Source of the DNA: Thalia democratica | Lineage: Eukaryota | DNA: 64,000 nucleotides | Assembly (NCBI GenBank): GCA_965202585.1 | Contig: OZ241830.1 | Coordinates: forward strand, 26,784,001 to 26,848,000 | Direction of reading: 5' to 3' | Shown here: one piece after another, positions 1-25,217 of the stretch | Numbering within the stretch: position 1 is the first letter of the stretch | Layout: every line of letters begins with the position of its first letter | Notes under the pieces: generated by a model | The model's input: only the letters and a program-made list of their open reading frames with translations | Told to the model about the DNA's origin: nothing | The model's database searches: none | Program-made: the position numbers and the translations under genes

Positions 1-3000
1 GAATGATTGTTTAAAACTGTAGGTGAAATTACATTTTTAATTAAAAGTCTTTTCTATTTTCATCTACTCCTTTAATATAAAAGTTATTAAACTTTACAAT
101 TTAAAATTGTTTATTTTAAGAAGTTGTTTCAGTTTATAATTTGCATTTAAATTCTTAAGTTTACAGTTAAAGGAAAAATAAATTATCATTACATTAAAGT
201 TTAAAAAATATCTATATAACTTTGTTTTCTAGATTGTCCACCTGATACACAAAATCTCATTAATGGGTTTGCTAGACCAACCAAACATAGTGCTTGGCAC
301 CAGACATCTATTTACAAATGTAATACAGATTATACTCTTCATCCAGCAGAAAACAACAAGAGAGATTGTGTTGAGAACGGCGAGTGGGTAGGAGATGTAG
401 GAACTTGTTATCCTGGTAAGAAAATAAATTCTAAAAAAAATGAAAAGTATAAATGAGTAAATTATATTTAACACTTCTCAATAGAGATAAGAAAAACATT
501 TTAAATATTGCCTTTTTGTGAAAATTCAAAGTTTTTTTTACAAATTATGCAGGTTTGTTAAATAATGTGTCAGAAAAAAATCATTTTATATTCAACAGTA
601 TAACATTAGTTTTGTTTACCACTTTTTAATTGTATATTTTCACTGAAGACTTTGAACATTTCGACATTATTTTTGTTTGTCATTACGTTAAGATAAGAAT
701 GAAAAGTTTTTAGCATGATTCTTTAAAACTTTCGGGTAAATTGTATGTTTTATAAAAAGTATTTTCTTTTTTTTTATCTGCTCCTTATATAAAAAACTTA
801 TTATACTTTGCGATTTAAAATAGTTAATTTTTAGAAATAGTCTAGTTTATAATTTATAAATAGATCCTTAATATTTATAATTGTAGGAAAAGTAAATTAT
901 CATCACATTAAAAAAGCACAAAATTCTAAATAACTTTGCTTTCTAGATTGCCCATCTGATACACAAAATCTCAATAATGGATTTGCTAATCTAACCAAAC
1001 ATAGTGCTTGGAACCAGACATCTATTTACAAATGTAATACAGATTATACTCTTCATCCAGGAGAAAACAACAAAAGAGATTGTGTTGAGAACGGCGAGTG
1101 GGTAGGAGATGTAGGAACATGTTATCCTGGTGAGAAAATAAATTCTAAAAAAAATGAAAAATATAAATGAGTAAATTATATTTAGCACTTTTCAATTGAA
1201 TTAATTAAAACATTTTAAATATTGCCTCTTATGTGAAAATTAAAGTTTTATTACAAATTATGCAGGTTTATTAAATAATGTATTAGAAAAAATCATGTAA
1301 TATCTAAAAGTACAACATTGGTTTTGTTTACTATTTTTATAAATGTATATGTTCACTGAAGAATTTGAACATTTTGACATTGTTTGTGTTTGTCATTACG
1401 TTAAGATTAGAATGAAAAGTTTTTAGCATGATTCATTAAAACTTTGGGGAAATTGTGTTTTTTATAAAAAGTATCTTCTTTTTTCTATCTGCTCCTTTTA
1501 TAAAAAAAATTTTATACTTTGCGATTTAAAATAGTTTATTTTTAGAAATAGTCTAGTTTAAAACTTTTATATAGATCCTTAATATTTATAATTAAAGGAA
1601 AAGTAAATTATCATCACATTTATAGAACAGGAAAATCTAAATAACTTTGTTGTCTAGATTGTCCACCTGATACAAAAAATCTCGATAATGGATTTGCTAA
1701 TCTAACCAAACATAGTGCTTGGAACCAGACATCTATTTACAAATGTAATACAGATTATACTCTTCATCCAGCAAAAAACAACAAGAGAGATTGTATTGAG
1801 AACGGCGAGTGGGTAGGAGATGTAGGAACTTGTTATCCTGGTAAGAAAATAAATTCTATAAAAAATGGAAAGTATAAATGAGTATATTATATTTAACAGT
1901 TTTCAATAGAGATAAGAAAAAAAATTTGAAAAATTGCAATATTTTTTTAAATACAAAGTTTTTTTACAAACTATGCAGGTTTGTTAAATAATGTGTCAGA
2001 AAAAAATCATCTTATATCCAACAGTACAACAGTAGTTTTGTTTACCACTTTTTAATTGTATATTTTTATTGAAGACTTTTAACATTTCGACATTATTTTC
2101 GTTTGTAATTACGTTCTAATTAGAATAAAAATTTTTTAGCAAGATTTTTTAAAACTATAGGGGAAATTGTATGTTTTAAAAAAAGATTTTTTCTTTTTCT
2201 ATCAACTCCTTTTATAAAAAAAATTTTATACTTTACGATTTAAAACAGTTTATTTTAAGAAATAGTCTAGTTTATAATTTATTATTGGATCCTTAATGTT
2301 TATAATTAAACAAAAATTAATTATCATCGCATTAATTAAGTAAGATAATCTAAATAACTTTGCTTTCTAGATTGTCCATCTGATACACAAAATCTCGATA
2401 ATGGATTTGCTAACCTAACCAAACATAGTGCTTGGAACCAGACATCTATTTACAAATGTAATACAGATTATACTCTTCATCCAGCAGAAAACAACAAGAG
2501 AGATTGTGTTGAGAATGGCGAGTGGGTAGGAGATGTAGGAACTTGTTATCCTGGTGAGAAAATCAATTCTATAATTAATATTAAAAAATATATAATTGAA
2601 CTAATTGTATTTAACAGTTTTCAATTGAGTTAAGAAACACATTTTAAGTATTGACTTTTTGTAAAAATACAAAGTTTTATTACAAATTATGCAGGTTTGT
2701 TCAATAATGTATTAGAAAAAAATCATCTTATGTCTAAAAGTACAAGATTTGTTTTGTTTACCATTTTTATAGATGACTATTTACTCTGAAGTTTTAAACA
2801 TTTCGACATTATTTTTGTTTGTTGTTACAATAAGATTAGAATCGAAATTTCTAGCATGCTTGATTAAAACTGTAGGAGAAATTGTAGGTTTTATAAAAAG
2901 TATCTCTATTTTATATCTACTCTTTAAAAAAAACTTATTAAACTTTACGATTTAAAATTGTTTATTTAAAAAAACAGTTTCAGTTTATAGTTTATATATA

Positions 3001-4010
3001 GATCCTTAATGTTTATAACTTTACTAAAAGTAAATTATCATTTCGTTAATTAAGAACAAAAATCTAAAAAACTTTGCTTTATAGATTGTCCATCTGATAC
3101 ACAAAATCTCGATAATGGATTTTCTAACCTAACCAAACATAGTGCTTGGAACCAGACATCTATTTACAAATGTAATACAGATTATACTCTTCATCCAGCA
3201 GAAAACAACAAGAGAGATTGTGTTGAGAATGGCGAGTGGGTAGGAGATGTAGGAACTTGTTATCCTGGTGAGAAAATCAATTCTATAATAGCAATGAAAA
3301 ATATTAATGAAGAAACTATATTTATTAGCACTTTAAAATGAAATTTAGAAAAACATTTTGAAAGATTACTTTTTTTATGAAAATACCAAGTTTTATTACA
3401 AATTCTACAGGTTTTGTTCAGTAGTGTATTAGGAAATAATCATGTTATGTCCAAAAGTACAACTTTAATTTTGATTACCATTTTTATAAATGTATATGTT
3501 CACTGAAGCCTTTGAACATTCCGACATTGTTTTTGTTTCTCATTACGTTATAATTAGAATAAAAAATGTTTAGCATAATTGTTAAAAACTGTAGGAGAAA
3601 TTGTATGTTTTATAAAAAGCCTTTTCTTTTTACTATCTGCTCTTTTATAAAAAACATATTAAACTTTACGATTTAAAATAGTGTATTTTAAGAATTAGTT
3701 TCAGTTTATGACTTATATTCAAATGCTTAATGTTTATAATAAAAAGAAAAATAAATTATCACCACATTAAAAAAATACCAAAAATCTAAAAAACTTTGCT
3801 TTCTAGATTGTCCGTCTGATACACAAAATCTCGATAATGGATTTTCTAACCTAACCAAACATAGTACTTGGAACCAGACATCTATTTACAAATGTAATAC
3901 AGATTATACTCTTCATCCCGCAGAAAACAACAAGAGAGAATGTGTTGAGAACGGCGAGTGGGTAGGAGATGTAGGAACTTGTTATCGTGGTGAGAAAATT
4001 GAATCTTAGA
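1..4010 (+). repeat. Tandem array of ~714-bp exon+intron units (plus-strand CCP array); continues off the left edge
   Basis: Exon starts at 233, 947, 1658, 2371, 3085, 3807 (spacing 711-722). Introns are recognisably homologous (e.g. caaattatgcaggttt, gatttaaaatag, taactttgctttctag). Bases 1-232 match the intron 3' part. Confidence 0.95.
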
Positions 4011-5826
4011 CAATCTGAAATATATATATATAACTTAATTTTGTTTTTAAATTACTCTTTAAAGTTTTTTTTCTTTAACATGCTGAAAACTTTAGATAAA
4101 AGTTGCAGATTTTTTCTATGATTTTCTAAAAAGTTTATAAAAAGCACTCAAAAGATTGTTTTATTACCATTTTTGTTTCAAACCTGATACATTTGTACAG
4201 CTTGCCCTCTGCTTGATATTCCTGATGATGGTAAAGAGATTATTTTGCACAATCACTCACATCGGCCCGATGTTCGCTTGCCAGGGGAAGTCGTTAAAAT
4301 TGTTTGCAACTCGGATTTCGTTTTTGTCGAAAAGGAAGCTGACTATGCGTACCAATGTTTGAACGACGGTACTTGGAACAACAGTGTAGTGGCAATTTGC
4401 ATGAAAAGTCAGAAAATATATTCAAACATTTTTTATTAAAAAATATAAGCTTTTTTGTTAATTTTTTGTTGTTAAAGTTGATTTTTGCCACCCTTTGAGC
4501 ACAACAAAACAGTAAAACTCAACTTTGTCAACAACAGAATGCGGTGCGCCGCCGAACGTAGAAGATTACGAAGTGGAATTCAATTACAGCGCTGTAGTTG
4601 ACCAGTACTGGTTCAACACAACTGTAACCTACCTAGCTTGCAAGGCTGAAAAATACCTTCTGTACCCTGATGACGTCACAAACGCAAGAAACGTGCTAAC
4701 GTGCGAAAGGACCGGCACGTGGAATCCTGAAACGGCCCCCAACTGCGGATTGTGTTAGTTTCCTTCAACTGTTCAGTTAAATTTTCACAAAAATATCTTT
4801 TTCTGCTTTGTAGCAACTACAATTCTTTATTTGGACACTTTTGTCGGCTCTATTTTTGATTGGCACCAGATGCAACCTACCGTACACTTTAAACTATTTT
4901 TTTAACAGCTTGCATCTATGAACCTGTGGAGTGCATAGAAACTCTTACGAATCAACTGACATGCACTTATGAAGGAGAAGGCAAAGTAAAAGGCAGCAAG
5001 ATCCTATGGAAGGACATTACGCATCACCTCGACTTGTTCAGAACGGAAAGCTGGACTTCAAGGAAGAGGATAATACACTGCATTGATGGGTTGTTTTTCG
5101 AGTTTCCCTCGAATAGAGAATACACTTGCCAACGAGATGCTCCTTGGTCGCCTTACCCGCTTCCGAGGTGCCTGAGAGGTTTGGTGAATTTGTCATTTAA
5201 AGTATAGTGATTTGATTAGCAGTGCATTCGCTCTTTTTTTTTTTTTAAACTGCATTATTGCGTGTGGCTTAGATCGTAAAAGCTATTGGAAGTATATGAG
5301 AGCGTAACATGTGTCTCATTAGAATTATTCTAAAGTATTAAAAAAAAAAATTTTTGTAAATAAGCTACATGTTTCAACTTACAGCTTCGTTGAACTTTTA
5401 ATTTGCTCGATATTGGTTTAAAAAATCCAAATTTGATGTAATTTATGCAAAACTTAAACCACCCAAAAAGAAAAAACAATAAAATTTTCATATAAAGTAA
5501 AGCTAAAAATACCAAATTAAGATAATGTATTTTTACTTACAAAATAACAACTATGTGTTATCAATTAAAGAACTACTACATAGAAATATTTAAAAAGCTT
5601 TTAACTTGTGAAATTTTCAGCCTGTGCCAGTAATTATTCTGACTTCGACAATGTTGGCACATTTACTTTTTCAAACTATGAAGATGGCAAAAACTTTAGA
5701 GATGGAAATTATCTGGTGGGAACTAAAGTCACGTACACTTGCCTTTATGAGTACGAAGCGGTGAATGGCGTAGAAGCTACTTGCAAACCCGATGGAGAGT
5801 GGGATCCGCCTGTTGTATGCAATTAA
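233..5826 (+). CDS. Gene A: multi-Sushi/CCP (SCR) domain protein, 3' part (5' end off-window); at least 10 CCP-type domains, no TM segment before the stop, so probably secreted
   Basis: Manually read phase-1/phase-1 exons with AG/GT ends: 233-415, 947-1129, 1658-1840, 2371-2553, 3085-3267, 3807-3989 (each 183 nt, consensus DCPSDTQNLDNGFANLTKHSAWNQTSIYKCNTDYTLHPAENNKRDCVENGEWVGDVGTCYP, all open), then 4201-4407 (ACPLLDIPDDG...CLNDGTWNNSVVAICMK), 4538-4753 (CGAPPNVED...TCERTGTWNPETAPNCGL), 4909-5178 (divergent, extra Cys) and 5621-5826 (ACASNYS...TCKPDGEWDPPVVCN stop). The C..C..C..GxW..C pattern is the CCP signature. Confidence 0.9.
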
Positions 5827-7949
5827 TATGCATACTATATTGTATGCAAAATAACTAACACTTTTAATTTTTGTTTCGACTTGTTTAAATTGTACTTTAC
5901 CTGTTTATTTGTGTTGAAATAAGAAGTTTTAACTTTACTTGCTTGTTGTTTTTTTTTTTAGTTTTATTTGTTGAATTCAAGTGTTTTCCATATATTTATA
6001 AAAAATCTTTTTTAATAAATTTAGATGCTTTGTTTATAGACTTTTATTTTTTTTTACGAATATATTTATGTGCGTTATTAAATTTTCGCTTCAATTAAAA
6101 TTACAACCTCTTTCTTTAACATCAAAACAGCTTTGGATTTTTTTAGATGGTTTTTTAGCAAAACATCTAATATTTATTCGGATTAACTGTTTAACAGTGT
6201 TTACTAACGTAAAAGTACTTAAGGTTAGCCTTAGTAAAACGTTTATATTTTGTACTACTTTTTTTTAATAGTTCATTGATTATGATATGATTGTTTTTAC
6301 AGTGATTTTAGTTAAACCTAAGAGATACTTATAATTGAATAAACTTTTACTCTTCACAAATATAAAGTATTAAAATAAGTTGTAAGAAAGAGAGATGGGT
6401 ATCAAAACTTATTGTCTTAAATATTTTATAAATTTCAATAAATATTTTTTAAATTAAATTTTTACACGGAAAATTATATTTTCACGAGGTATTATAAGCT
6501 GATAGCATGGTTGCCATAGTTCCGAACAATTAGGGTTTTTTTTATAGCTTAGGGACGGTTAAGGTTTATTAATGGGTTCATATATGCAGTTGTACGTTAT
6601 TTATGCATGTGCGTTGTACGTAAAATACTACGCTTAAAGCTTTCAAATAAAATAATATTACTTGACTGATACATTAAATGGAACTATTGTTTTATAATAA
6701 TTGATTATTAGTAGAAACATTCTATTTCAGAATTATAACTTTTTAAATCAAGTTTACTTAGTTTTACGAAAACAAAATGTAACATTAATGTGAATCGGTC
6801 TACCAACATTGTGATAAGGATTATACTTGATTTTCGTATTTCAAAGCAGGCATTTTTCGTCTATATATGTGTTTATTAATTTAAATGGAAAGTCTTGAAT
6901 ACTTAAAATTAAAACTGTGAAAATTAAATTCGATTTAAATTATAATTTTACTTAAAAATAAAGTCCAAAACATAAATGTAACCAGAGATTAGCTTTTCAA
7001 ATTAAAAACTAGACTAATTGTTGCAAAATAAAAAATCTTATTTTAATTTCAAACAATAGTTAATTAAAAACAAAGATTTAGTTAGTTTATGAAGTGTAAA
7101 GGTATTTCAGACTTTACTTGTTGTTTAATTTTATTTTTTTATTTAGCGTGAGAATAAAAAAGCAATAAAATAGCGCATTTTTTATGGTGTAAACATAGAT
7201 TATTTTATAACAATAATGTTGCATGATCATGATAAGCCAATGAGAGAATAACATTTGGAAGTTCGAACTTATGTTTTTCAAAAGTATCAAGAGATGCTTA
7301 CACCAGCATTCCATAATCATGAAATAAGCCTATGAGAGCCTAAAGTTAATGTCCTTGGAGCGTTAGGTTTTTATTTTTGTTGTTAGTCAATGCATTTAAA
7401 TACTTGATGTTGATCGTTCTACATAAAATCGTAAATAAATATAATGTGATTAAAATTTTGCTTTTTATGTTAACTTATAAACTTTATATCAAATTATGAT
7501 TTTATATTTGTTATAATAAATAAACTATATGTGTTATTTAATCTTTTATTTATACGTCTTCCAGTTTAAGTGGTCTAGGTTTTGATGCCTAGGTTCATCA
7601 TATGAACAATAAACTTGTAACCGTATAGTAAAATATATAAAAAGGCATAGTTGTTGATTAAAATATTAAAATGAATTAGAACAACCTATATACATTTAAA
7701 GTGTTTTTTATCCTAGTTTCTAAATAAACTAACTTTATTGTCCCTGGTATGAATCTTTTATAAAAAAAATTATTTTACCTATACGTTAGTTTGTTTCTAA
7801 CATTAACTTTTATTGTTTAAGATTTTAGACCTTTAATTTTTTACCTTTAATAAAGGTATATTATAAAATTTTAGTTTTCAGTTTCTTTTTATGTTACACA
7901 CTTGGTAGTAGCTAAAAAAACTTTTGATCGGTCTGCATGCAAAATTGAT

Positions 7950-8378
7950 TTTCCGTGCGAAAAAGTCATCGTGCGAAAATGTCGCCGTGCAAAAATTTCA
8001 TTGTAAAAATGTGACGTTGTGCAACAATGTTGCCGTAAAAAATTGTCATCGTGAAAAATGTCGCCGTGCAAAAGTGTCTCCTCGTGCAAAAGTGACGCCG
8101 TGCAAAAGTGTCACCTCGTGCAAAAGTGACCCTCCGTGCAAAAGAGTCGCCGTGCAAAAGTGTCCCCTCGTGCAAAAGTGACCCTCCGTGCAAAAGTGTC
8201 GCCGTGCAAAAGTATCCCCTCGTGCAAAAGTGACGCTCGTGCAAAAGTGTCCCCTCGTGCTAAAGTGACGCTCGTGCAAAAGAGTCGCCGTGAAAAAGTG
8301 TCCCCTCGTGCAAAAGTGACCCTTCGTGCAAAAGTGACCCTCGTGCAAAAGTGTCCTCTCGTGCAAAAGTGACGCTGT
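7950..8378. repeat. Minisatellite of ~16-18-nt units (core CGTGCAAAAGTG), probably expanded subterminal repeats of a non-autonomous DNA transposon
   Basis: Many gtgcaaaagtg(a/t)c(c/g)c units. The same core occurs in the terminal regions of the elements at 14315-14476 and 15473-15965. The five ORFs called here are repeat artefacts. Confidence 0.85.
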
Positions 8379-9701
8379 ATATGTAAAACAATAAACTTAA
8401 TAGAAACAAAACTTTTTTAGTCTGGCTAGAAGATTAATTAAATGCCACTAAAGCTGCGGCCCGCGAAGATTTTAAAACTTGAAATTGGCCCGCGAGCACC
8501 CCCTGGTCTAATACTAAAAAAAAGACCAAATTTAGTTAAACTATTATTAGACTCTCTTATGGTTTTAAGTAACATGTGCGTTTACTCAGGATAAACTTGC
8601 TTACACAAAAGAAACATTTGCGGTTGACATTGAAAAGGTTGTATTTAAAAGACAAAAACTTTAAATCGGCTTTAAAATGAAGGAGAATGTATATTATATA
8701 AGCGCTTTATTATATATTATACAAGATTCGAATCCTGGTAGTGATTATTTATTACTCTTAAACCGGTCTGTATTGTCAGTTTATACAATTGCATTGTTTT
8801 TAACTTAAACCAAATAATTATGCATTTCGTTCTGGGTATTACATCCAATTATAAAGATATTCGTAAAATAAAATATTTTACTAATAATCAGTAAATATAA
8901 AAAAAAAATTCCACTTTATGTATAAATCGAAAACATCGCTTTCATTAAAATCGCTTATAGTAATAAATATCATAATAAATTTCTAACTTACAGCTACGGC
9001 TATGAGCTCATAAATAAAGCTAATTAGCTTTAAGCAAACTCTAGGATTTAAGTTAAAGACAAACTTATTTTAAATTTACGACTCTAAATAGTAAGAAAAA
9101 ACTAAATATTGTTCTGAAATTCAGGTCGTAACTTTTATATAAAGCAGTTATATCTAAGCAATAAGTTTTCATACTAACCTTCCGTTCGAATAACTTGTTT
9201 TAACAATTAAAAAGTCTAAATAACTAAACTCAATTTGGTTAATGCTACATATTTTTAACTTTTTACGTTATTACATTGAAAATAATTTGATAGCAAAACT
9301 AACTATTGAAAACTAGACAAAGTAGACATTCAGAAAATCCTTTTATTTAGAAAAAACATTGGCTACTATTAAGTTCGTATTCACTGCTAAACAAAACCTA
9401 AACGTATACTTATCAAAAATTTTGGCCAAGCAAGTAGCTAAACTATGAATATATATTTATTTCAATGAAAGACACTGTTATTTTTGTATATGTTTTTATA
9501 GTAATTGAATGTTTTAAAAAACAAATTTATCAAACAAATTTAAACATCTATCATATTCGATTAGAAAAAATTTGTGTATTATGGAAAAAAGTGAAACAAA
9601 AAAAAACTAAAAAAACAAGTGGGTAAAATTAAAGAGTCTAAATCAAACACGAAGAAACAAGTAAAAACAATTTAAACAAGTTAAAACACAAATGAAAAGT
9701 G

Positions 9702-12700
9702 TTAGTTAGTTTGATGTTTATTGCACCTAATAGGCGGATCCCACTCTCCATCCCATCTGCAAGTAGCTTCACCGTCATTATTCTCATTATACCCCGAATC
9801 GCAAGTGTACTTGACTTTAGTTCCCCGTATATAATTTTCTTGTCTTAAATTTTCGTTTGAAAAATTAAAACCGCTGACATTGTTGTCAATTCCACTAAGA
9901 TCACTTTGACAAGCTGAAAATTTATTAACAGTTGTAATAAGTACTAACTCTACACAACAAACTACATAGCATGATTAATAGAAAAAAATATATATCACCT
10001 TTTTTACATTTTCCTCGTACACCCACCCACGTTGCGTTCTTGCTACAAGTAAGTTGGAACGAATCTGCGCTGCTCCCGTCTTCGAAAAAGAGCGAAGAAC
10101 CAACTTCGCACGTGAAAATTGCTACGCGATGATAAGGAGCATGGTCGGTCACTGATGATTGGGTGTTATTAAATGATGGGACGTCAGGACAATCTGTAAT
10201 GAATGATTCATACGCTCCAGGTTTGTATAACTTTGTCAATTAGTTGAGAAAACTATAACAATAAACGCCTTACTTTAATAGTTTAATATAAGTATTCTAT
10301 TAATTTGAAAATCGGCAACAGATAGAAAATTTTGAAAAAAAAAAATTATCATTTCAAAATCGAGTCCAAAACTTGGCATCAAGTTAAGGGTATTATATAT
10401 CAGGTAATTGATACACACATGAGTGCACTTAATAAGTTTCTAAATAAACTTAAAAATATACATATAATTTTTTTTTGGTCAATCACTTTAGTGATATTTT
10501 TTTACATATAACTTTTTAGACTTTGTTTAAAGTGAAAGCTTTGTTATAAAAAACATGTTTATTTATTTCTGTTCTATCAAAAAAAGACAAATTTGTGGTA
10601 AACCCACATATTTAATAACTGTGGTATACTACTTAATGACGTTCACATTTTATTAAGCTATTTTGCAAAATTTGTTTGCTGAAATCAAACACAAAGACTT
10701 TAGCTATTTGTGGTAATTAATATGTCTATGGTATGAGCCTAAAATATTTTACTTAAAAAAAACCACTCTAGTCATACATCACGAATGCGAACTTATCATA
10801 AATTCGATTAAAATTAATAATTTTCATAACATTACCTGATTTTATTTTAAATTTAATTGCAAAATTCATAACAGTTTTGATTTATCATAAGTTATAGGAA
10901 ACATCTTTATTTTGTACATAAAATAATAAAGTAACTAATCCGTGTCACTAATCAAACTAACAAAAAATCGTTACTATTAGATTTTAGGTTGATATAAGTA
11001 TCATTTGCAAAAAAAAAAAAAACAATTTTAAAATTTGGAAAAGTATTATTTAAAGACTACAGCTAAGTGATCATTTCAGATATATTTTAAATGTAAGTTA
11101 AATATATGTTAATACTAGTTGTTAGAAATTAAATTCAGTTAAAAATGAACAAAGTTTACGCAGTTATTTTTGACAACACAAAAAAACATATCAAAAATAA
11201 GAATGATTCTAGTAAAGTTTTCCAACATTATCTTAATTTGAACGCTCAGAGGTGTATAAAATATATTTAGTGATCTGGATTGATAAAGAAGCTGTTTCTA
11301 GAAAATACTTTATTTTAATTCAAATGTTGAGAAAAGTCTATTTTTGGCATTAATGTTGAAGTTACAAAAAAATATCTATAATTTGTATTTTAGGTCAAGT
11401 TAAATAAGTAAAACCACCGTCTATAATTAATAAACATTCTCTATATAAGCTTTTAATGAGGATATTATCACAACTAGTTATTTTCATATACAATATGTCA
11501 ACTAAATCATAGTTTTCCTTATTTAATATTTGATTCTTACAAATCTCTTATGAAAAATATGTACACTAACTGTACTAGATCAGTAAAGTTTTATGACATT
11601 TAAAAAAAAAACTACAATGTGTTTGTTCTTTACTTGCAACAAAAATCGTAACAACCTCTGACGCAGGCAACCTCATGTTCCCACCCCATCGTAGTGCACA
11701 CAGCTTGGTTGCCGGTTAACGAATACGCACCGGCGTCGCAGGTGTAGTTCAAACGTTCGCCGTCCGTGTAAACTCCGTTGTGCAGTTCCGGTGGCTCGCA
11801 AGCTGCAATTGAAAAATTTCAAGTGAAAATGTTTCAGGTAGTAACAGTTTGGGGCAGTTTAAAAAAAAAAGTAGCTTTTAAAAGTTTACTTTTTGTACAA
11901 AAATTTCATGCAACTGTGGCTTCCGTTTCAAGCGCAACAAACTGCGCCACCTCGAAACTAGGAACGCCAAGTGTAAAAACTCACGGTCGAAAGAGAACGT
12001 TTTGTCGATGATGAGGCGCTCGAGGCTGTAAGTTTTGCACTCGGCCCAGCTGGGAACAGGGGCGTGCTCGGGAAACCTACCTGTTACCGCAACCCATGAG
12101 TAGTAAGAGTCTGAAAATAAAAGTACTTTGAGTTCTTTTTTGTTCTGAATAAAAACTTTGAGTTTGTATAACAGTTAAACGTGAAAATTTGATGGGTATT
12201 TTAGTATTTTAGATGTGCACAGATTTCGCTTGGTGTATTTTTGATTGTAAGATTTTTTATATTAAAGTGTTTTAGTAAGTTAGATAAGTCAACCATGACT
12301 ATTTTAAATATAATATGTAAAATAATATTATACTATACTAATCTTATATATAAAATAGTATGTTAATAATGATGCATAAAATTTTATAAAAATATATTTA
12401 ATACATTTAAATATTAAAAAATGTGTTAACAATTACTACAATTAATATAATAAATATAACATACGTAAAAGGTGTACATTAAATGTGTGCTAGGATCTTA
12501 ATCGTTTTACATAACTAAAGTTAAAACAGTCAAAACCATAAGTAATCTAAATTTTTTCAGATATTAACTCAAAAGGTTGATTCTTTTAAATCAACGAATA
12601 AGTAAACATAAACACCAGCGCGAATTTATATTTATAAAACACAAATTATAAATGTTCACTGTTATATGAGAGCGCGCATCCGTCAATACGATCGAGCCCG

Positions 12701-13208
12701 ATCTTTCTCAGTACTGTTTTCACTTGACTGTGGTGAGTAAATTCGCTGACGCGCGATTCTCCCCTCACCGCCATAATTATGACGTCACCGTAACTTGAGT
12801 TGCTTTCGATCCAAAGGCACATGTCAATAGCCTGTAAAAATGTAATCTCTCTTCAAGTGTGTTAAGTAACACATAGTAAACTACTAGAAAATCTTTGTTA
12901 CCAAGCCTACAAACTAAACTTTGGAATTATTACAAAATTACAACAAGCTGTCGTTGAAGGTCGACAAACATTAAATCAAAATCCGAACCCGCATTTGAAA
13001 CCACACAAAAACATCGAATTACAAACTTCGCTCTGATGGACGGTGTCAAACTTCTCGTATTTAATTTCGTTAGTCAGGGGGTTTATGATGGCGACGCCCG
13101 TCCCCCTGTAAGCCGTATCCAGGTTACCCGACCCCTGCCACCTGATAGCGGCGTCACGCTTCGTCGACCCCTTGCATCCCGCCGAATACGCGTACACGTG
13201 GAAAGTTC
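9702..13208 (-). CDS. Locus B, downstream part: ILEI/PANDER (FAM3-like GG) domain followed by three CCP domains; either the C-terminus of the 14917-24968 gene or a separate gene
   Basis: Phase-consistent exons 13027-13208 (GTFHVYAYSAG...YRGTGVAIINPLTNEIKYEKFDTV), 12660-12831 (AIDMCLWIE...GDVIIMAVRGES...VLRKIG), 11985-12110 (SYYSWVAVTG...), 11656-11802 (CEPPELHNG...C..GWEHEVACVR), 9999-10193 (DCPDVPSF...CSKNATWVGVRGKCKK) and 9702-9913 (ACQSDLS...TCRWDGEWDPPIRCNKHQTN stop). SAG / RG..V.IIN / FDT / IIMAV.GE / LRKIG / SW.AV.G follows the ILEI motif order as recalled. Confidence 0.8.
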
Positions 13209-14916
13209 CTGCGAAAATTAAACTGAATAAACGTGCTGATTGCAATTGGGTTCAATGAACAATGTTTCTTGACACTTCAGTCTACAGAAGAACTCGTGAT
13301 TTAAAGTTTAAAATTAATGTTTTTAAAAACGCTTATACGTGGAAACTCTCTGCATAAAAACACTGATTAAAAGATAATTAAATAACACAATAAAGCACAC
13401 ATAGAAAAGTTCCTGTAGGAATAAAATTATTCTAAATAAAAAAATATGCTGATTTAAATTTGAAGCAGAATGAACAATGCTTTTTTATAAATAAATTTAC
13501 AAGACAGCTCATGATTTTGAATGTGACATTTCAAATTTAAAACACGCGTCGCACGTGTCATATCAGAATCAGATTGTGAAAGTTAATTAAACAAAAACGA
13601 AAAGTACTTGACACTTCAACATGCAACACAGAATTTAGTAGCTCTGCGTTGAAACGCGCGTTTTTCTGAAGAATCTTAGCGGAAAAAATTTTCTAAAAAA
13701 CTTTTTTTACATTTCAACATGCAGGAAAGCAAATGAGATGAAACGAAGAAACTAATTCAAATTTATTTACCAGTTTCTAATGATTGAACAAAATATATTT
13801 AATAAATACGTAACAATATATATGAACATTAGAGTTAAATATTAGCAAGCGGTAAATAAACTTGAATTAGTTTCTTCGTTCCATTCATGTAAGTAATTTA
13901 TATTATGATTTATTATTTTATTTTGTATTTTAGTTTACTTTTCTTAATTTAGACTTAAAAACTACAAATATCATATAGTTTTATAACAGTCGAATTTAAC
14001 ATTAAGTATTTTACCTATTATTAACCAATAACCTCTAAAATTCTGTAGAACTTACCTTTATTTTAATGAACACATGTAGACACCTACCTTAGCTTCTATT
14101 CTTTTTCTTTTAGAGTATTTATAATTTTTTACAGAACCCTGTTGAAGTGTCTTAATCCGTTAACACACAGAAACATATGTCGGTACAATAAAAGAAGATA
14201 CTGTATGAATTGTTTTTATCATATATTCCAGTGAACTTGTTTCAGTAGGATATTTTATTAACAAACACTTAAATTTATATTTTGAATAGTTAAAAAAATT
14301 AATAAAAACTCAATTCTTGCAAAAATGACCCCTCGTGCAAAAGTTTTTTCGTGTAATTTTGTTCCCTTGAGCAAAAGTGTCTTCTTGCAAAAGTACTTAT
14401 CTGTTTTTTTTTTTACTCTCGTGCAAAAATGACCCTCCGTGCAAAATTGTCTTCGTGAAATTTTGACCTGTTCCCATTTTAAACACCTCTTTTATACTAT
14501 AGATACAGTTTTTACTTTGTGACTAATTAACTTGTGTCAATTACTGCTCATTTATTGCGTCATAATAATTAGCGCGCTTTCTAACACAAGCAAGCAGCTT
14601 TAAAACTTCTAAAAAAACTCCACATTTTGTAACAAAAAATCATGTTTCTTATATATTTTACCTTTTGCAAATTTGGCTTTTTGCAAACTTTTAAAAAAGT
14701 AAATTGTATACTACTAATACTTTTACTATTACGTAATAGTAATACATTTACGTACTTACGTGGAAATGAAAGCCACATCGTAAGCTAGACATCTTGAAAT
14801 TTTAGAAACTAATAAACTATCTCCTCAAAACTACAAAGCACTTGTTTGGTAAGCACTAAGCGCAGCACTCAAAGCGCTCTTGTTACTAAAACCGAGCAAA
14901 CAACTCAAGTACAAGT

Positions 14917-17900
14917 TTACCAAACAAACTTATTTGGGGAGCAAGTGAAAGCTGGTTCGTGATCCCAATCACCATCCAGACAAGTTATCGTATTTGAACC
15001 CTCCATGGTGTGGTGAGCATCGCATGTGTAGACGGCTCGTGTCCCGCGAATCAACAGTGTGTCATCTGTGTTGTACTCCAACACATAAGTGGACCGACCG
15101 TCTCTTGGCGGGTGCGAGCAGACTGATTAAAAAGTAGATAAGTTACGCCTCTACTATTAGTGGGCAGATTTATCGAGGTACTATTTGAAATTTTTTAAGT
15201 GGTAAGACAATTCTTTATATATATGAGAAATTTGAACTTGTAAGTCTAAATAAAACAAGAAAATTATTTTTAAACTGCATAAAAGTTAAGTTTAAACTAT
15301 TTTAAAAGTTAAACTATTTTGATTAAATCAAAAACTTTTCTAGGTTGTTACTGTGTTTATCCTAAACCGTGCTGCTTAAACTTAAATTATAGCAAATGTA
15401 TTCGTTTTTCCAATAAACATACGTTTAAACTATCAAAAGTTCAAAAAATATTATTAATTATATATTAATATAGGGAACGGGTCAAAGTTGCACCAAGACA
15501 GAATTTCACAAGGTTACTAAATTGCACGAAGACAAAATTGCTTGAGGGCACAAAATTGCACGAAGACAGATTTGCAACAATTTTGCACGAGAGTGAAAAA
15601 AAAACAGAAGATAAAAACTAAAATATAAATTAGTAAAAAAAAAAAAAGATAATAAAAGTTACTGACCGAGGGTAAGGGTTTGGGGTAAAAATGATAGTAA
15701 AAAAAAACTAATAAAAATAATTAAAACTTAAAGAAAAAGAATTAATTAATAAGGCAGAATAAAAAAACCTACCAACCGAGGGTAAGGGTTAAGAGTAAAA
15801 GTAAAAAACTAATTTATATATTTAAAAAAAATACTAAGTTATAAAAAAAAAAGTTCAACTCGTGCATTTTATCTTGGTTCAATTTTATCTCCTCGTGCAA
15901 AAGTGTTTTCGTGCAAAAGTATCTTAGTGAAATTTTGTGCCCTCGTGCAAATTTGACAGCTACCCATTAATATAAGTTAGCAAACGATAAAAACGAACTA
16001 ATAAAATCTGATTATCTTAAAGACTAATTAAAGTTTAATTTAATTATGCCATTAACTTAACAGCAAAGGCCCGTCAAACTGTTGGTCACTTTATCATTCT
16101 TCTAAATTTAAACAATCATTCTAAAAATTTTACATTCTAAATATAACGTAATGATAAACAAAAAGAATGTCGGAATGTTCAAAGGCTTTGGTGAAAATAG
16201 TTATTTATAAAATTGGTGATCAAAACTAATGTTGTACTTATGGACATAACATGATTTTTTTCTAATACATTATTGAACAAAAAAAGTATAGCTTGTAATA
16301 AAACTTTGTATTTTCACAAAAAAGTAATCTTTAAAAATGTTTATCTTAACTCAATTGAAAACAGTTAAATATAATTTACTCATTTATACTTTTCATTTTT
16401 TATAGAATTGATTTTCTTACCAAGATAACAAGTTCCTACATCTCCTACCCACTCGCCGTTCTCAACACAATCTCTCTTGTTGTTTTCTGCTGGATGAAGA
16501 GTATAATCTGTATTACATTTGTAAATAGATGTCTGGTTCCAAGAACTACGTTTGGTTAGATTAGCGAATCCATTATCGAGATTTTGTGTATCAGATGGAC
16601 AATCTAGAAAGCAAAGTTATTTAGATTTTCGTAATTTTTTATGTGATGATAATTTACGTTTTCTTTAATTATGAACATTAAGGATTTAAGTACAAATTAT
16701 AAACTGAGACTGTTTCTTGAAATAAACAATTTTAAATCGTAAAGTTAATAAGTTTCTTATAAAAATAGTAGATAGAAAAAAGAAAAGAATTATTATAGAA
16801 CATACAATTTCTCCTACAATTTAAACAATCTTGCTAAAAAAATTTCATTCTAGTTATAACGTAATGACAAACAAAACAATGTCGAAATGATCAAAGTCCT
16901 TAATGAAAACATGCATTTAAAAAAAATAGTAAACTAAACCAAAGTTGTACTTTTGGACATAAGATGATTTTTTTCTAATACATTATAGAACAAAACCTGC
17001 ATAAATTGTAATAAAACTTTGTATTTTCACAAAAAAAGGCAATATTTAAAATGTGTTTCTTAATTCAATTAAAAACTGTTAAACATAATTTACTCATTTA
17101 TATTTTTAATTTTTTAAAAATTGTTATTTTTACCAGGATAACAAGTTCCTACATCTCCTACCCACTCGCCGTTCTCAACACAATCTCTCTTGTTGTTTTC
17201 TGCTGGATGAAGAGTATAATCTGTATTACATTTGTAAATAGATGTCTGGTTCCAAGTACTATGTTTGGTTAGGTTAGCAAATCCATTATCGAGATTTTTT
17301 GTATCAGGTGGACAATCTAGAAAGCAAAGTTTTTTAGATTATCATAATTTATTAATGTGATGATAATTTACGTTTTCTTTGATTATAAACATTGTGGCTT
17401 ATATACAAATTAGAAACTGAAACTATTTCTTGAAATAAACAATTTTAAATCGTAAAGTTTAATAAGTTTTTTATAAAAGGAGCAGATGAAAAATAGAAAA
17501 TACTTTTTATAAAGCATACAATTTCTCCTACAGTTTTAAACAACCATGCTAAAAATTTTTCATTCTAATCTTATTGTAATAACAAACAAAAATAAAGTAG
17601 AAGTTTTTAAAGTTTTCAGTGAAAATAGTCATTTATAAAAATGGTTAACAAAACTAATGTTGTACTTTTGGACATAAGATGATTTTATTCTGACACATTA
17701 TTGAACAAAGCCTGTATAGATTGTAATAAAACTTTGTATTTTCATAAAAAAAGTAATCTTTAAAATGTTTTTCTAAACTTTATTGAAAACTGTAATATAC
17801 AATTTATTAAATTACAGTTTTAATTTTTTTTAAATCGATTTTCTCACCAGGTAAACAAGTTCCTACATCTCCTACCCACTTGCCGTTCTGAACACAATCT

Positions 17901-20900
17901 CTCTTGTTGTTTTCTGCTGGATGAAGAGTATAATCTGTATTACATTTGTAAATAGATGTCTGGTTCCAAGCACTATGTTTGGTTAGGTTAGCAAATCCAT
18001 TATCGAGATTTTGTGTATCAGATGGACAATCTAGAAAGCAAAGTTATATAGAATTTCATGTTTTTTTAATTTGATGATAATTTAATTTTCGTTTAATTAT
18101 AAATATTAAAGATTTAAATATAAGTTATAAACTAGACTATTTCTTAAAACAAACTATTTTAATGTGTAAAGTATTGAAAGTTTTTAATAAAAGGAGCAGA
18201 TAGAAAAATTAAAATACTTTTCATAAAACATACAATTTCCCTAAAGTTTTAATGAATCATGCTAAAAACTTTTCATTCTAATCTTAACGTAATGACAAAC
18301 AATAATAATGTCGAAATGTTCCAAGTCTTCAGTAAAATTATACATTTAAAATACAGTAATTAAAACCGATGTTGTCCTTTTAGACATAATATGATATTTT
18401 TTGACACATTATTGTACAATCCTGCATAATTTGTAAAAAAAACTTTGTATTTAAAAAAAAAACTTTATTGAAAATGTTTTTCTTAACTCAATTGAAAACT
18501 GTTAAATATAATATACTCATTTATACTTTTCATTTTTTTAGAATTGATTATCTTACCAGGATAACAAGTTCCTACATCTCCTACCCACTCGCCGTTCTCA
18601 ACACAATCTCTCTTGTTGTTTTCTGCTGGATGAAGAGTATAATCTGTATTACATTTGTAAATAGATGTCTGGTGCCAAGCACTATGTTTGGTTAGTCTAG
18701 CAAATCCATTATTGAGATTTTGTGTATCAGATGGACAATCTAGAAAGCAAAGTTATTTAGAATTTCATGTTTTTTTAATTTGATTATAGTTTAATTTCTC
18801 TTTAATGATAAACATAAAACATTTTAATATAAATTATAACCTAGACTATTTCAATAAAACAGACTATTTTAAATCGTAAAGTACAAAAAGTTTTTCATAA
18901 AAGAGTAGATAGAAAAAAGAAAATGCTTTTTATAAAACATACAATTTCCCCTAAAGTTTTTTAACAATCATGCTAAACATTTTTCATTCTAATTATAACG
19001 TAAGGAGAAATAAAAACAATGTCGGAATGTTGAAAGTCTTCAATGAAAATTTACATTTAAAAAACTGTAAACAAAACCAATGTTGTCCTTTTGGACATAA
19101 TATGATTTTTTTCTGAAACATTATTGAACAAACCTGCATAATTTGTAAAAAAACTTTGTATTTTCTTTAAAAAAGCTTTATTTAAAATGTTTTTCTTAAC
19201 TCCATTGAAAAATGTTAAATATAATTTATTCACTTATTTATTTTATTTTATTTTATTATTGATTTTCTTACCAGGATAACAAGTTCCTCCATCTCCTACC
19301 CACTCGCCGTTCTCAACACAATCTCTCTTGTTGTGTTTGCTGGATGAAGAGAATAGTCTGTATTACATTTGTAAATAGATGTCTGGTTCCAAGTACTATG
19401 TTTGGTTAGGTTAGCAAATCCATTATCGAGATTTTGTGTATCAGATGGACAATCTAGAAAGCAAAGTTATCTAGAATTTCATTATTTTTTTAATTGATGA
19501 TAATTTACGTTTTCTTTAACTATGAAAATTAACGATTTAAGTACAAATTATTAACTGAAACTGTTTCTTGAAACAAACAATTTTAAATCGTAAAGTTTAA
19601 TGATTTTTTATAAAAGGAGCAGACGAAAAATAGAAAATACTTTTTATAAAAATTACAATTTCTCGTACAGTTTTAAACAACCATGCTAAAAGTTTTTCAT
19701 TCTAATCTTATTGTAATAACAAACAAAAATAAAGTTAAAATTTTTAAATTTTTCAGTGTAAATAGTCATTTATAAAAGTGGTTAAAAACAGTAATGTTGT
19801 ACTTTTAGACATAAAATAGTTTTTTTTCTAATACATTATTGAACAGAACCCGCATAATTTGTAAAAAACTTTGTATTTTCACGAAAAAATTAATCTTTAA
19901 AATGTCTTTCTTAACTTTATTGAAAAGTGTTATATACAATTTATTAATTTACACTTTTCATTTTTAAATTAATTTTCTAACCAGGATAACAAGTTCCTAC
20001 ATCTCCTACCCACTCGCCGATCTCAACACAATCTCTCTTGTTGTTTTCTGCTGGATGAAGAGTATAATCTGTATTACATTTGTAAATAGATGTCTGGTTC
20101 CAAGCACTATGTTTGGTTAGGTTAGCAAATCAATTATCGAGATTTTGTGTATCAGATGGACAATCTAGAAAGTAAAGTTATTTAGATTTTCGAACTTTTT
20201 TATTTTGATGATAATTTACGTTTTCTTTAATTATGAAAATTAACGACTAAAGTACAAATTATTAACTGAAACTGTTTCTTGAAACAAACAATTTTAAATC
20301 GTAAAGTTTAATGAGTTTTTTATAAAAGTAGCAGACGAAAAATAGAAAAATACTTTTTATAAAACATACAATTTCTCCTACAGTTTTAAACAACCATGCT
20401 AAAAGTTTTTCATTCTAATCTTATTGTAATAAAAAACAAAAATAAATTTGAAATTTTTAAAGTTTTCAGTGTAAATAGTCATTTATAAAAATGGTTAAAA
20501 ACAGTAATGTTGAACTTTTAGACATAAAATAGTTTTTTTTCTAATACATTATTGAACAGAACCCGCATAATTTGTAAAAAACTTTATATTTTCACGAAAA
20601 AAGTAATCTTTAAAATGGTTTCGTAGCTTTATTGAAAAGTGTTATATACAATTTATTAATTTACACTTTTCATTTTTTAAATTAATTTTCTAACCAGGAT
20701 AACAAGTTCCTACATCTCCTACCCACTCGCCGTTCTCAACACAATCTCTCTTGTTGTTTTCTGCTGGATGAAGAGTATAATCTGTATTACATTTGTAAAT
20801 AGATGTCTGGTTCCAAGCACTATGTTTGGTTAGGTTAGCAAATCCATTATCGAGATTTTTTGTATCAGGTGGACAATCTAGAAAGCAAAGTTATTTAGAT

Positions 20901-23900
20901 TATCTTTTTTTTTTTGTTATTATAATGTACTTGTTTAAATTATAAGCATTAATGATTTAAAAATAAATAAAAAAACATAGTTTCTGACATTTTATGCAAA
21001 TTGCCACTACACTGTTGTTCCAAGTACCGTCGTTCAAACATTCGTACGCATAGTCAGCTTCCTTTTCGACAAAAACGAAATCCGAGTTGCAAACAATTTT
21101 AACGACTTCCCCTGGCAAGCGAACATCGGGCCGATGTGAGTGATTGTGCAAAATCAACTCTTTACCATCATCAGGAACATCAAGCAGAGGGCATGCTGTA
21201 CAAATATATCAGGTTTGAAATAAAAATGTTAATAAAACAATCTTTTGAGTGCTTTTTATAAACTTCTTAGGAATTCAAAGAAAAAATCTACAACGTTTAT
21301 CTAAAGTTTTCAGCATGTTAAAGAAAATAAAACTTTAAAGGGTAATTTTAAAACAAATTAAGTAATATATCTATTTCAGATTTTTTTAGATTCGGTTTTC
21401 TCACCACGATAACAAGTTCCTATATTTCATACCCACTAGCCGTCTTTAACACAATCTCTCTTGTTGTTTTCTGCTGGATGAAGAGTATAATATGTATTAC
21501 ATTTGTAAATAGATGTCTTGTTCCAAGCACTATGTTTGATTAGGTTAGCAAATCCATTATCGAGATTTTGTGTATCGGATGGACAATCTAGAAAGCATAG
21601 TTTTATAGATTTTTTCAAAATTTTTAAGTAATGATAATTTACCTTTTCTTTAACTATAAACTTTAGGAATTTAAATACAAATTATAAACTGAAACTGTTT
21701 CTTAAAATAAACAGTTTTAAATCGTAAAGTTTAATAAGATTTACCAAAGGAGTAGATTAAAATAGAAAATACTTTTAATATAAAATATAATTTCTCTTAC
21801 AGTATTTAACAATCATTCTTAAAAATTTTTATTCTAATCTTTACGTAATAAGAAAAAATAATAGTTTTAGAATGTTCAAAGTTTTCAGTGACGATATTCA
21901 TTATAAAGATGATAAATACAAATAAAGTTGTACTATTGGACATAACTTAATTTTATCTAATACATTATTGCTCAAAACGAGCATTATTCGCAAAAAAAAC
22001 CTTGTATTTTCACTAAAAGGGTAACCTTTTTTGCGTTTTTTTGAATTCTTAAAACCTCATACTTGTTTTATCTAACATTTAAAAGTGTTAATAAATACAA
22101 TTTATTCATTTAAAATTTTCATAATTATTATAGAATTTATTTTCTCACCAGGATAACAAGTTCCTACATCTCCTACCCACTCGCCGTTCTCAACACATTC
22201 TCTCTTGTTGTTTTCTGCTGGATGAAGAGTATAATCTGTATTACATTTGTAAATAGATGTCTGGATCAAAGCACTATGTTTGGTTAGATTAGCAAATCCA
22301 TTATCGAGATTTTGTGTTTCAGATTGACAATCTAGAAAGCAAAGTTATCTTGCTTACCGTATTTTTTTGATATATATTTTTTTGTATTTATCATGAACTT
22401 TTGTTAAAATTATAACTATAAAAAATTAAAACAAAAATTGCAAAAATAACATTAATTCTATAATAATTTGAAAGTCGAAGAGCTTAGTGAAATTTTTATA
22501 AAAGGAGCGGATAAAAAGGTGAAAAGACTTTTTGTAAAACATACAATTTCTCTTAATGTTTTAAATAATTATACTTAAACATTTTCATTATAATCTTGAC
22601 GTAATATCAAAAAATCATAGTGTCAGAATGTTTCAAGTTTTCAGTGAAAATATTCATTTCATAAAAATGGTAAACAAAACTAATGTTATACTTTTGGACA
22701 TAACATGATTTTGATCTAATACATTTATGCAGAATACGAGCACTATTAGTAATTTTAATTTGAGTTTTCACAAAAAGGGTAATCTTTTAAATGTTTTTTT
22801 TATCTTCTTAAAAACTCATACGTGTTTTTTCTAATACTGAAAAATATAGTTTATTCATTTATATTTTTCATATCTATTTTAGAACTAATTTTCTTACCAG
22901 GATAACAAGTTCCTACATCTCCTACCCACTCGCCGTTCTCAACACAATCTCTCTTGTTGTTTTCTGCTGGATGAAGAGTATAATCTGTATTACATTTGTA
23001 TATAGATGTGTGGTTCTAAGCACTATGTTTGGTAAGATTAGCAAATCCATTATCGAGACTTAATGGATCAGATGGACAATCTAGAAAGCAAAGTTATTTA
23101 GTTTTTCTTAACGTTTTGTTAATCTTATATTCATTAATGTAAAGATAATAAAATTTTCTTTAACTATGTGCATTAAAACTTTAATATAAACAAAAAACTA
23201 CGATTTTTTCTAAGATAAATCATTAAAATTTGTTAAGCATAATAATTTATTTATTAAAGGAGCGAATAAAGAAGAGAATAAACTTTTTATAAAACATACA
23301 ACTTATCCTATAGTTTTAAACATTTATTCTGAAACATTTTAATTCTAGTCCATGCATTTAATTCTAATCTTAACGTAATGACAAACAATCATTATTTCAA
23401 ATTTTTCTAAGTCTTCATTGGAAATGTTCTTTTATAAAATTGGTAAACAATACAAGTATTTTTTATACTTTTGGTCTTAAAGTAATTTTTTTCTACTACA
23501 TTATCGCACGAAAGGAGCATCGGAAAATAACTTTGCATTCTGCATAACAGGTAATTTTTCAAATGCTTATTCTTTTTTACACTTCATAGAACTCATACGT
23601 GTTTTATCTTAAATTGAAAAGTGTTTTTAAATATAACTTGTTTATGTATCGTTGACAACTTATTTGGAATATATTCTCTAAAATCTCCTTTTCATTAAAT
23701 TATTAAAATTTAGGATATGTGATAATTTTACTTGACTGATATAAAATCTTAAATACTTTCTTATAAAAAAATAATAGTTTTATTTTTAATAATACTAGAT
23801 AAGTTGTTTTAATTGTTTTAAGCTTTAAATTATAACTAAGAAAGTTTTAATAAGATCTAAACACACTTGATTGGTTTGATTAAACCTGCTTTTCCCAAAA

Positions 23901-24968: not shown

Positions 24969-25217
24969 CTTTAAAGAAAAAATAAGCAAAAGTTTTTTTC
25001 TTACAAAAATATGTTAAATGCTAAACTCACTGTATTAAAATCTTGTTTATTATTAACAATTGTTGTTTTTTAAATTTCACATGAATACAAATAAAGTAAA
25101 GACTTTAAAGAAACAAAACAGCGATCACATCTGTTTAAGAGTCAATGCCGTCAGGCTTCTACTATTTTTTAAGTCTTTGGTTAATAAAAAACAGTTATAA
25201 AATGTAAATTTACTCAC

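Follow-up and report, generated by a model that had tools for sequence, protein, structure and literature searches.

How do two genes that diverged long ago come to share an array of closely similar exons? The question is raised by a locus of Thalia democratica on contig OZ241830.1 (assembly GCA_965202585.1), where a plus-strand gene and a minus-strand gene, here called gene A and gene B, face each other within the 64,000-nucleotide stretch that we analysed (positions 26,784,001 to 26,848,000 of the forward strand; hereafter the window). Both genes contain a tandem array of the same 183-nt exon, which codes for a complement control protein (CCP, or sushi) domain, and in an initial annotation it was proposed that an ancient inverted duplication now undergoes exchange between its arms, like a palindrome. 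We have found that genes A and B are old tail-to-tail paralogues that form the arms of an inverted duplication, that their arrays are younger than this duplication and mixed between the arms, and that the minus-strand array is decaying under neutral evolution. The explanation that we hold to be somewhat likelier right than wrong is that array sequence would have been copied between the inverted paralogues at least twice after the duplication, with multiplication of units within each arm, conversion limited to the exons, and decay of the minus array.

Two inverted paralogues and their exon arrays

A blastn search recovered 16 copies of the exon in the window, with 89-98% identity to the first of them, six on the plus strand and ten on the minus strand (Table 1). 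The two arrays are convergent and lie 12.4 kb apart (3989 to 16421); the count, the facing orientation and the spacing of about 12 kb that were given in the initial annotation were all confirmed, and the exon-plus-intron unit, described there as about 714 bp, was measured at 709-749 nt (about 713 nt), with introns of about 530 nt. Units are named here by P and the exon start in the plus arm, and by M and the higher exon coordinate in the minus arm, M17316 for instance being the exon at 17134-17316. The exons are bounded by a ...ctag acceptor and a gt donor in phase 1-1, and are 183 nt long in all but one copy, which has a 1-nt deletion. Since all exons are in phase 1-1, the reading frame survives their gain, loss or exchange. 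The first 232 nt of the window are filled by standard intron sequence, and the plus array therefore extends past the left edge.

Each array exon codes for one CCP domain, and C1, C29, C45, W51 and C58 are kept in every intact copy. The array exon passes the Pfam Sushi model (PF00084) marginally, at 21.3 bits against a curated cut-off of 20.7, while the variant (V) exon of the two genes scores 23.1-23.6 bits and the terminal exons 32.0 and 34.8; the remaining CCP exons range from 18.7 to 34.9 bits, some of them slightly below the cut-off. Amino acid variants that had been noticed in both arms were found again, namely PPDTKN in P1658, M17316 and M20877, AR(P/L)TKHSAWHQ in P233 and M18739, and an ending in CYR in P3807 and M21587. 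The description of the arrays as near-identical holds for the exons (89-99%) and fails for the introns of the same units, which are about 80% identical.

The age of the duplication itself was estimated outside the arrays. In a BLASTP comparison the terminal exons of the two genes shared 36 of 68 residues (53% identity, E = 2e-21), and beyond them the 3' flank of gene A aligned with the reverse complement of the gene B flank over 914 columns, with 269 mismatches and 87 gap positions (E = 7e-50). Identity of the flanks was 61% overall and about 67% at the 827 ungapped positions, giving a composition-corrected divergence (K) of about 0.44, which is a lower bound for neutral divergence because the stretch is partly coding or 3' untranslated region (UTR). 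In a stricter search, 5690-5972 matched 9853-9586 with 71.7% identity, and the mirror-image matches centre on an axis near 7790. Self-comparison of the window found no inter-arm homology left in the central spacer (6747-8848), and from the V exon to the terminal exon the two genes cannot be aligned as DNA and differ in exon number. Both the homology of the terminal exons and the ancient inverted duplication, as put forward in the initial annotation, are borne out by these exons and by the roughly 900 nt of mirrored 3' flank.

Arrays younger than the duplication and mixed between the arms

The introns tell a different story from the flanks. Mean intron identity does not depend on whether plus units, minus units or units of opposite arms are compared, being 71% when odd units are included and about 80% among regular units (K about 0.2). 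In a maximum-likelihood tree of the introns, P233, P947 and P1658 fell together with M19453 and M18739 (95-98% support), P2371 with M18030, M20877 and M20164, and P3085 with M16603. These three mixed clades (a, b and c) have a similar inter-arm depth of about 0.2 and are arranged in roughly the same order along gene A and gene B. M23080 and M22331 formed the outgroup to all other units, their introns being 70-79% identical to all others, close to the value for the flank; they may be original residents of the minus arm. A clade holding the plus units only was rejected in an approximately unbiased (AU) test (delta lnL 31.8, p-AU 0.0022), and clustering of the units strictly by arm, which had been named beforehand as evidence that would speak against exchange, was not found. 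In a test modelled on the pairwise homoplasy index (PHI), shuffling of the informative sites lowered the compatibility of neighbours, no value as low as the observed one arising in 2000 permutations, and 46% of informative site pairs failed the four-gamete test. Collinearity of the arms was best at unit register 4, if marginally (0.835 vs 0.80-0.82), and the youngest duplication within an arm is that of M20877 and M20164, whose introns are 95% identical. Because the clades share both depth and order, the simplest reading of the introns would be that one block of several units was transferred once and that units were then duplicated in tandem in either arm. Continuous conversion of single units would be less simple, and the Sawyer-type run test described below agrees with the single transfer.

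A later transfer is indicated by the V exon and its surroundings. From about 3785-4430 in gene A, matching 21609-20965 in gene B, a tract of ~650 nt that contains the P3807 array exon, an intron and the V exon is 91.3%, 91.2% and 94.0% identical between the arms in these three parts, with K of about 0.06-0.09. Just past the tract identity falls to 60%, and in the intron upstream of it identity is 78-80%. On the gene B side, about 25-40 nt of the tract follow the donor site of V, and after them come the last ~75-110 nt of a standard intron and then a standard exon. The V tract therefore has both the low divergence relative to its surroundings and the discrete ends that are looked for in conversion between paralogues, and the tree discordance and recombination signal likewise looked for are given by the AU and PHI-like tests, the Sawyer-type inter-arm test (see below) excepted. 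In outline it is a patch inside the array, the typical footprint of conversion or double exchange. A 437-nt contig from run X3 covers 21008-21437 and bears the minus-arm form with a few per cent of differences, so the patch predates the split of the X3 sample. The direction of transfer can only be inferred, as a single haplotype cannot show it.

The exons of the arrays differ far less than their introns. Relative to the consensus, divergence was 0.130 in introns (splice signals excluded) vs 0.037, 0.020 and 0.027 at the three codon positions (each p below 1e-22), so that at each codon position array exons are 4-5 times more alike than introns, or about 95% alike vs about 80% for the introns of the same units. 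Pairwise synonymous divergence of the exons (dS) was 0.05-0.085, and 0.067 between the arms, vs an intron K of about 0.2, while the ratio of non-synonymous to synonymous divergence (dN/dS) was 0.47 among plus exons, 1.1 among minus exons and 0.67 between the arms. At the exon edges, a span of 20-40 nt takes identity from about 0.67-0.78 to more than 0.9. Selection at the protein level is insufficient to explain this difference, because third positions stay far below the intron rate. The V tract serves as an internal control, with K of 0.093 for its array exon and 0.094 for its intron; a lower mutation rate of exons, or misaligned introns, is ruled out by this shared value. Taken together, the exon and intron distances suggest that the exons share a later ancestor than the introns, with homogenisation limited to exons in both arms. 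Biased conversion towards G and C gave no signal, the exon changes going mainly from G/C to A/T (40 vs 22).

The minus array is decaying. Four of its exons are broken, M23080 (at W21) and M20164 by one stop each, M21587 by two stops and M19453 by its 1-nt deletion, and two more are altered at invariant residues, M22331 by W21L, which removes a Trp, and M16603 by H18R. Ten invariant residues had been set from the same exon type in fragments of related AT-rich marine organisms, and they are unchanged in all six plus-arm exons. Damaged exons thus number six of ten in the minus arm and none of six in the plus arm (hypergeometric one-sided probability about 0.03). Non-synonymous and synonymous changes in the minus arm stand at 34 to 9, which equals the neutral expectation, and the ratio in the plus arm is about half of that. 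Because stops accumulate and dN/dS is about 1, the minus arm is no longer repaired. The array would be either a dying part of gene B or a part whose bad exons are skipped. As for the claim that the locus now undergoes exchange between its arms, one half stands, since array sequence did move after the duplication (intron K about 0.2 vs flank 0.44), and the word "now" does not, no tract being younger than about 6-9% divergence and the minus arm carrying stops with dN/dS of about 1.

Explanations for the shared array

In the explanation that we favour, array DNA would have been copied from arm to arm at least twice by non-allelic homologous repair, that is, by interlocus gene conversion or equivalent block copying. 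The first copying would have involved several units, of types a, b and c, and is placed at K of about 0.2; the second would correspond to the ~650-nt tract with the last array exon and V, at K of about 0.06-0.09. Between and after these transfers, units would have multiplied within each arm through unequal exchange. Short conversion tracts would start in the exon, the only long, GC-richer stretch of high identity, and would stop in the diverged, indel-rich introns, while selection in the intact plus-strand gene probably contributed to the similarity of the exons and the minus array would no longer be maintained.

Several results weigh against this explanation. In a Sawyer-type run test of the regular units, no inter-arm tract was significant after correction for all pairs, and the intron data fit one block event as well as they fit repeated conversion. 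The correlation between exon and intron distances persists (Mantel r = 0.48, p = 0.018), which a uniformly lower exon rate would fit, and edges as sharp as those of the exons would be expected from selection acting on exons and splice signals, the ends of conversion tracts usually being ragged. The exon counts are also small, with about 37 synonymous sites per exon and 19 synonymous changes in total. Gene A extends past the left edge of the window, and its missing part could include a second V unit or units like M23080 and M22331, which would alter the picture. Finally, a search for RNA runs containing 4000-10300 returned only runs with intronic DNA, and gave no RNA support for expression of either array.

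The correlated distances and the sharp edges also speak for the main rival explanation, in which a block was copied between the arms, and the exons were then held alike by selection on nucleotides (exon definition and splicing enhancers) as well as on protein, the minus arm having been released lately. Taking the array introns as a 20%-GC background, such nucleotide-level constraint accounts for the identity step lying exactly at the edges of exons and splice signals, for the correlated exon and intron distances, and for changes per exon that fit a simple star tree; the exon type is also kept at 41-57% amino acid identity in related marine organisms, so it is a long-selected domain. It does not account for third codon positions that are conserved as much as first positions, nor for synonymous divergence 2.5-5 times below intron divergence in both arms, and a constraint followed by release does not predict a minus arm that has dN/dS of about 1 and yet a synonymous rate below that of the plus arm. 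The known constraint by splicing enhancers is, in addition, much weaker than the exon conservation seen here, and we consider this explanation unlikely, though to be taken seriously. A somewhat slimmer chance is given to crossovers between the inverted arrays, which would flip the 12-kb spacer and swap array ends and 3' tails, with tandem duplication accounting for the remainder and no non-reciprocal conversion. Long inverted repeats 12.4 kb apart are a substrate for inversion by non-allelic recombination, the shared units do lie on the spacer side of the minus array in roughly the a-b-c order of the plus arm, and with every exon in phase 1-1 the recombinant genes would stay in frame. Nonetheless, a crossover moves sequence and does not copy it, whereas a, b and c clades of equal depth in both arms need copying, and the V tract, short, internal and with both ends within the minus array, is not the footprint of a single crossover.

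That no exchange took place between the arms, the diverged unit types being older than the inverted duplication and the flank evolving faster than the array introns, is in our view quite improbable. Such a history would agree with an intron tree that is nearly star-like and with the weak collinearity of the arms. The flank, however, holds 3' UTR, for which slower evolution would be expected, and nonetheless has about twice the K of the array introns; the V tract, with K of about 0.09 and abrupt ends, is too young to match the flank, and the inter-arm synonymous divergence is just 0.067. Least credible of all is an artefact of assembly, be it a collapsed or mis-joined haplotype or a false inversion within the repeat. 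Tandem arrays are prone to errors of assembly, and the available read evidence consists of Logan unitigs of 60-450 nt, shorter than one unit and none of them array-spanning, from runs of which two (X1 and X2) are possibly from the same individual as the assembly. Unit-specific introns are nevertheless matched by X1 and X2 unitigs that show 0-4 differences and have a depth of about 60-100, that of a single copy, and the V region has a unitig depth of about 200, about double, as for two copies. In addition, introns differ by ~20% between the arms, the unique exons differ, and the arms are joined by a decayed mirror flank, and misassembly is unlikely. Apparent joints between unitigs were discarded as evidence of rearrangement, since their sides measure 20-30 nt only and they are repeat artefacts. 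In the k-mer depth of runs X1-X3 over 17100-23099, the exon core reaches 1000-2000, or 10-35 times the single-copy intron unitigs; because of this depth the genome probably holds more than 16 copies of the exon, the further ones lying either in gene A to the left of the window or elsewhere.

Beyond these alternatives, the minus array might act as a reservoir of pseudo-exons that patches the plus array, as chicken pseudo-V genes do, or the homogeneity of the exons might result from repair in which spliced RNA or cDNA served as template. We see this as a long shot; if true, either process would be a built-in way to vary or reset a recognition stalk made of CCP modules.

Gene layout and other features of the window

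Genes A and B are predicted to encode multi-CCP (sushi) proteins, which are presumably secreted. Gene B, read from 5' to 3', has two upstream CCP exons, which are probably part of the gene, a lone intron, M23080, M22331, M21587, V, seven array exons, unique CCP exons and the terminal exon (Table 1). The lone intron is a full standard intron (23081-23632) upstream of M23080 with no recognisable exon before it, and at the other end of the array the standard intron homology of the distal block stops at about 16097.

Table 1. Positions of array exons, unique exons and flanks of genes A and B within the window
Feature	Position	Strand	Remarks
Gene A tandem array	1-3989	+	Six 183-nt CCP exons, all intact; continues beyond left edge
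Gene A array exons P233 to P3807	233-415, 947-1129, 1658-1840, 2371-2553, 3085-3267, 3807-3989	+	blastn
Gene A variant unit	3990-4440	+	Intron plus V exon (4201-4407, 207 nt, phase 1-1); 91.6% identical to 21404-20956
Gene A unique 3' exons	4516-5826	+	CCP-like frames 4516-4755, 4893-5204; terminal CCP exon 5621-5826, ends in stop
Gene A 3' flank	5859-6746	+	Mirror partner of gene B flank; aligned to 9701-8849
Central spacer of old inverted duplication	6747-8848	.	16-18-nt minisatellite at 7953-8371; axis near 7790
Gene B 3' flank	8849-9701	-	Mirror partner of 5859-6746
Gene B unique 3' part	9702-15126	-	Terminal CCP exon 9702-9913; CCP frames 9928-10239, 11633-11818, 14920-15126
Gene B array, promoter-distal block	16097-20877	-	Seven units, exons M20877, M20164, M19453, M18739, M18030, M17316, M16603
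Gene B array exons, first five	16421-16603, 17134-17316, 17848-18030, 18557-18739, 19272-19453	-	blastn
Gene B array exons, other five	19982-20164, 20695-20877, 21405-21587, 22149-22331, 22898-23080	-	blastn
Gene B variant unit within array	20956-21587	-	M21587 (21405-21587), intron, V exon 20989-21195
Gene B array, promoter-proximal old units	21588-23632	-	M22331, M23080
CCP exons upstream of gene B array	24214-24399, 24742-25020	-	

Other features lie within or between the two genes. The minisatellite of the central spacer has a 16-18-nt unit close to TCGTGCAAAAGTGTCCC and adjoins the symmetry axis of the two arms; copies related to it at 14261-14491, 15483-15576 and 15817-15966 stand in the opposite orientation within the long intron of gene B, and the minisatellite may be a dispersed repeat or the remnant of a mobile element. 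An ILEI/FAM3 domain was considered for two frames between CCP exons of gene B (12649-13251, minus strand) and was left unconfirmed, as Pfam gave no match on the separate pieces. In a gene B intron, 24466-24531 on the plus strand gave a sub-threshold Rfam match to Hammerhead_HH9 (22 bits against a gathering threshold of 52, E = 0.004 in a 401-nt search), and an Rfam scan of the whole window found nothing at the gathering threshold.

Further along the window, an intronless frame of 466 codons (62597-63997, minus strand) resembles protein disulfide-isomerase (PDI) and reaches the window end. Its nearest relatives are marine transcripts, with 53-58% identity, named animal PDIs having 31-37%, and this divergence points to a fast-evolving lineage. 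A frame of 298 codons at 46907-47803 (plus strand) is of low complexity, acidic and lysine-rich, and overlaps 36-nt tandem repeats at 47408-47733. At 39719-40887 (minus strand), where G+C is higher (34%), frames of 104-140 codons form a cluster that may be a mobile-element remnant.

Relatives, known systems and what the locus means

Searched with HMMER against 1.84 billion representative proteins, the locus matched generic multi-Sushi proteins at ~33% identity and single-exon fragments at 41-58%, and among these representatives no orthology to a named complement regulator or to an allorecognition gene of the Botryllus fester type was found. As far as sequence comparison goes, the locus cannot be called a complement regulator or an allorecognition gene, and these matches speak neither for nor against the variable-length recognition or complement-regulator system that was suggested in the initial annotation. 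The contigs of relatives, which come from Tara Oceans and other marine metagenomes, are 0.6-1.1 kb long and hold one array-type exon each, and a scan of JGI metagenomes for relatives of the array exon returned nothing. On one Tara Oceans contig (L004), positions 1-189 resemble the gene B exon at 11633-11818 (ending ...MGWEHE.AC) and lie ~260 nt upstream of an array-type exon at 451-723. Because this exon order differs from that of the window, the CCP gene family has been reshuffled between species.

The human RHD and RHCE genes are paralogues with facing 3' ends, between which gene conversion transfers segments (PMC4824203 and works cited there). They are the closest case in geometry and process, being tail-to-tail and at most a few tens of kb apart, with mosaic tracts and tree discordance in both systems. 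The present locus differs in that an internal array of exons plus introns was exchanged, in a far older duplication (K about 0.44), with one array decaying, and in a marine invertebrate. The palindromes of sex chromosomes have arms that are >99% identical throughout, non-coding sequence included (PMC8600007, PMC8327919, bioRxiv 10.1101/800185). Like them, the locus has inverted arms round a spacer (5690-6746 vs 9853-8849), genes in the arms and transfer between the arms. Unlike them, its introns are about 80% identical, its flanks 61-72% and its best tract 91-94%, only the exons reach 89-99%, and no tract is recent. The comparison with a palindrome made in the initial annotation fails on this account, an intron identity of about 80% between the arms being far from >99%.

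In primate class I alcohol dehydrogenase (ADH) genes, exon and intron trees are in conflict owing to conversion of coding parts (PMC3409193). There, as here, the introns keep the older history and the exons look younger and more alike. The ADH genes, however, are whole-gene tandem paralogues, whereas 16 copies of a single exon are spread here over two inverted arrays. The locus can also be set beside tandem repeats of extracellular modules, which are kept similar within a gene and shift in copy number by unequal exchange, as the arrays studied here probably do. In the abalone VERL repeats, the long homologous repeats of human CR1 and the LPA kringle IV-2 repeats, the whole unit is homogenised within one locus. 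Homogenisation of the whole unit was not observed here, where exons of about 95% identity stand against introns of about 80%, and the homogeneity, confined to exons, is common to two inverted loci.

The locus is thus a fresh example of known processes and not a new kind of system or mechanism. Its value lies in being a clear and datable case of inverted paralogues that exchange an internal exon array, with three layers of age in one 23-kb stretch and with the fate of the exons separated from that of the introns. For annotation and phylogeny the locus calls for caution, since four to six of the ten minus-arm exons are unable to encode a sound domain, and trees built from the exons would badly under-date the duplication.

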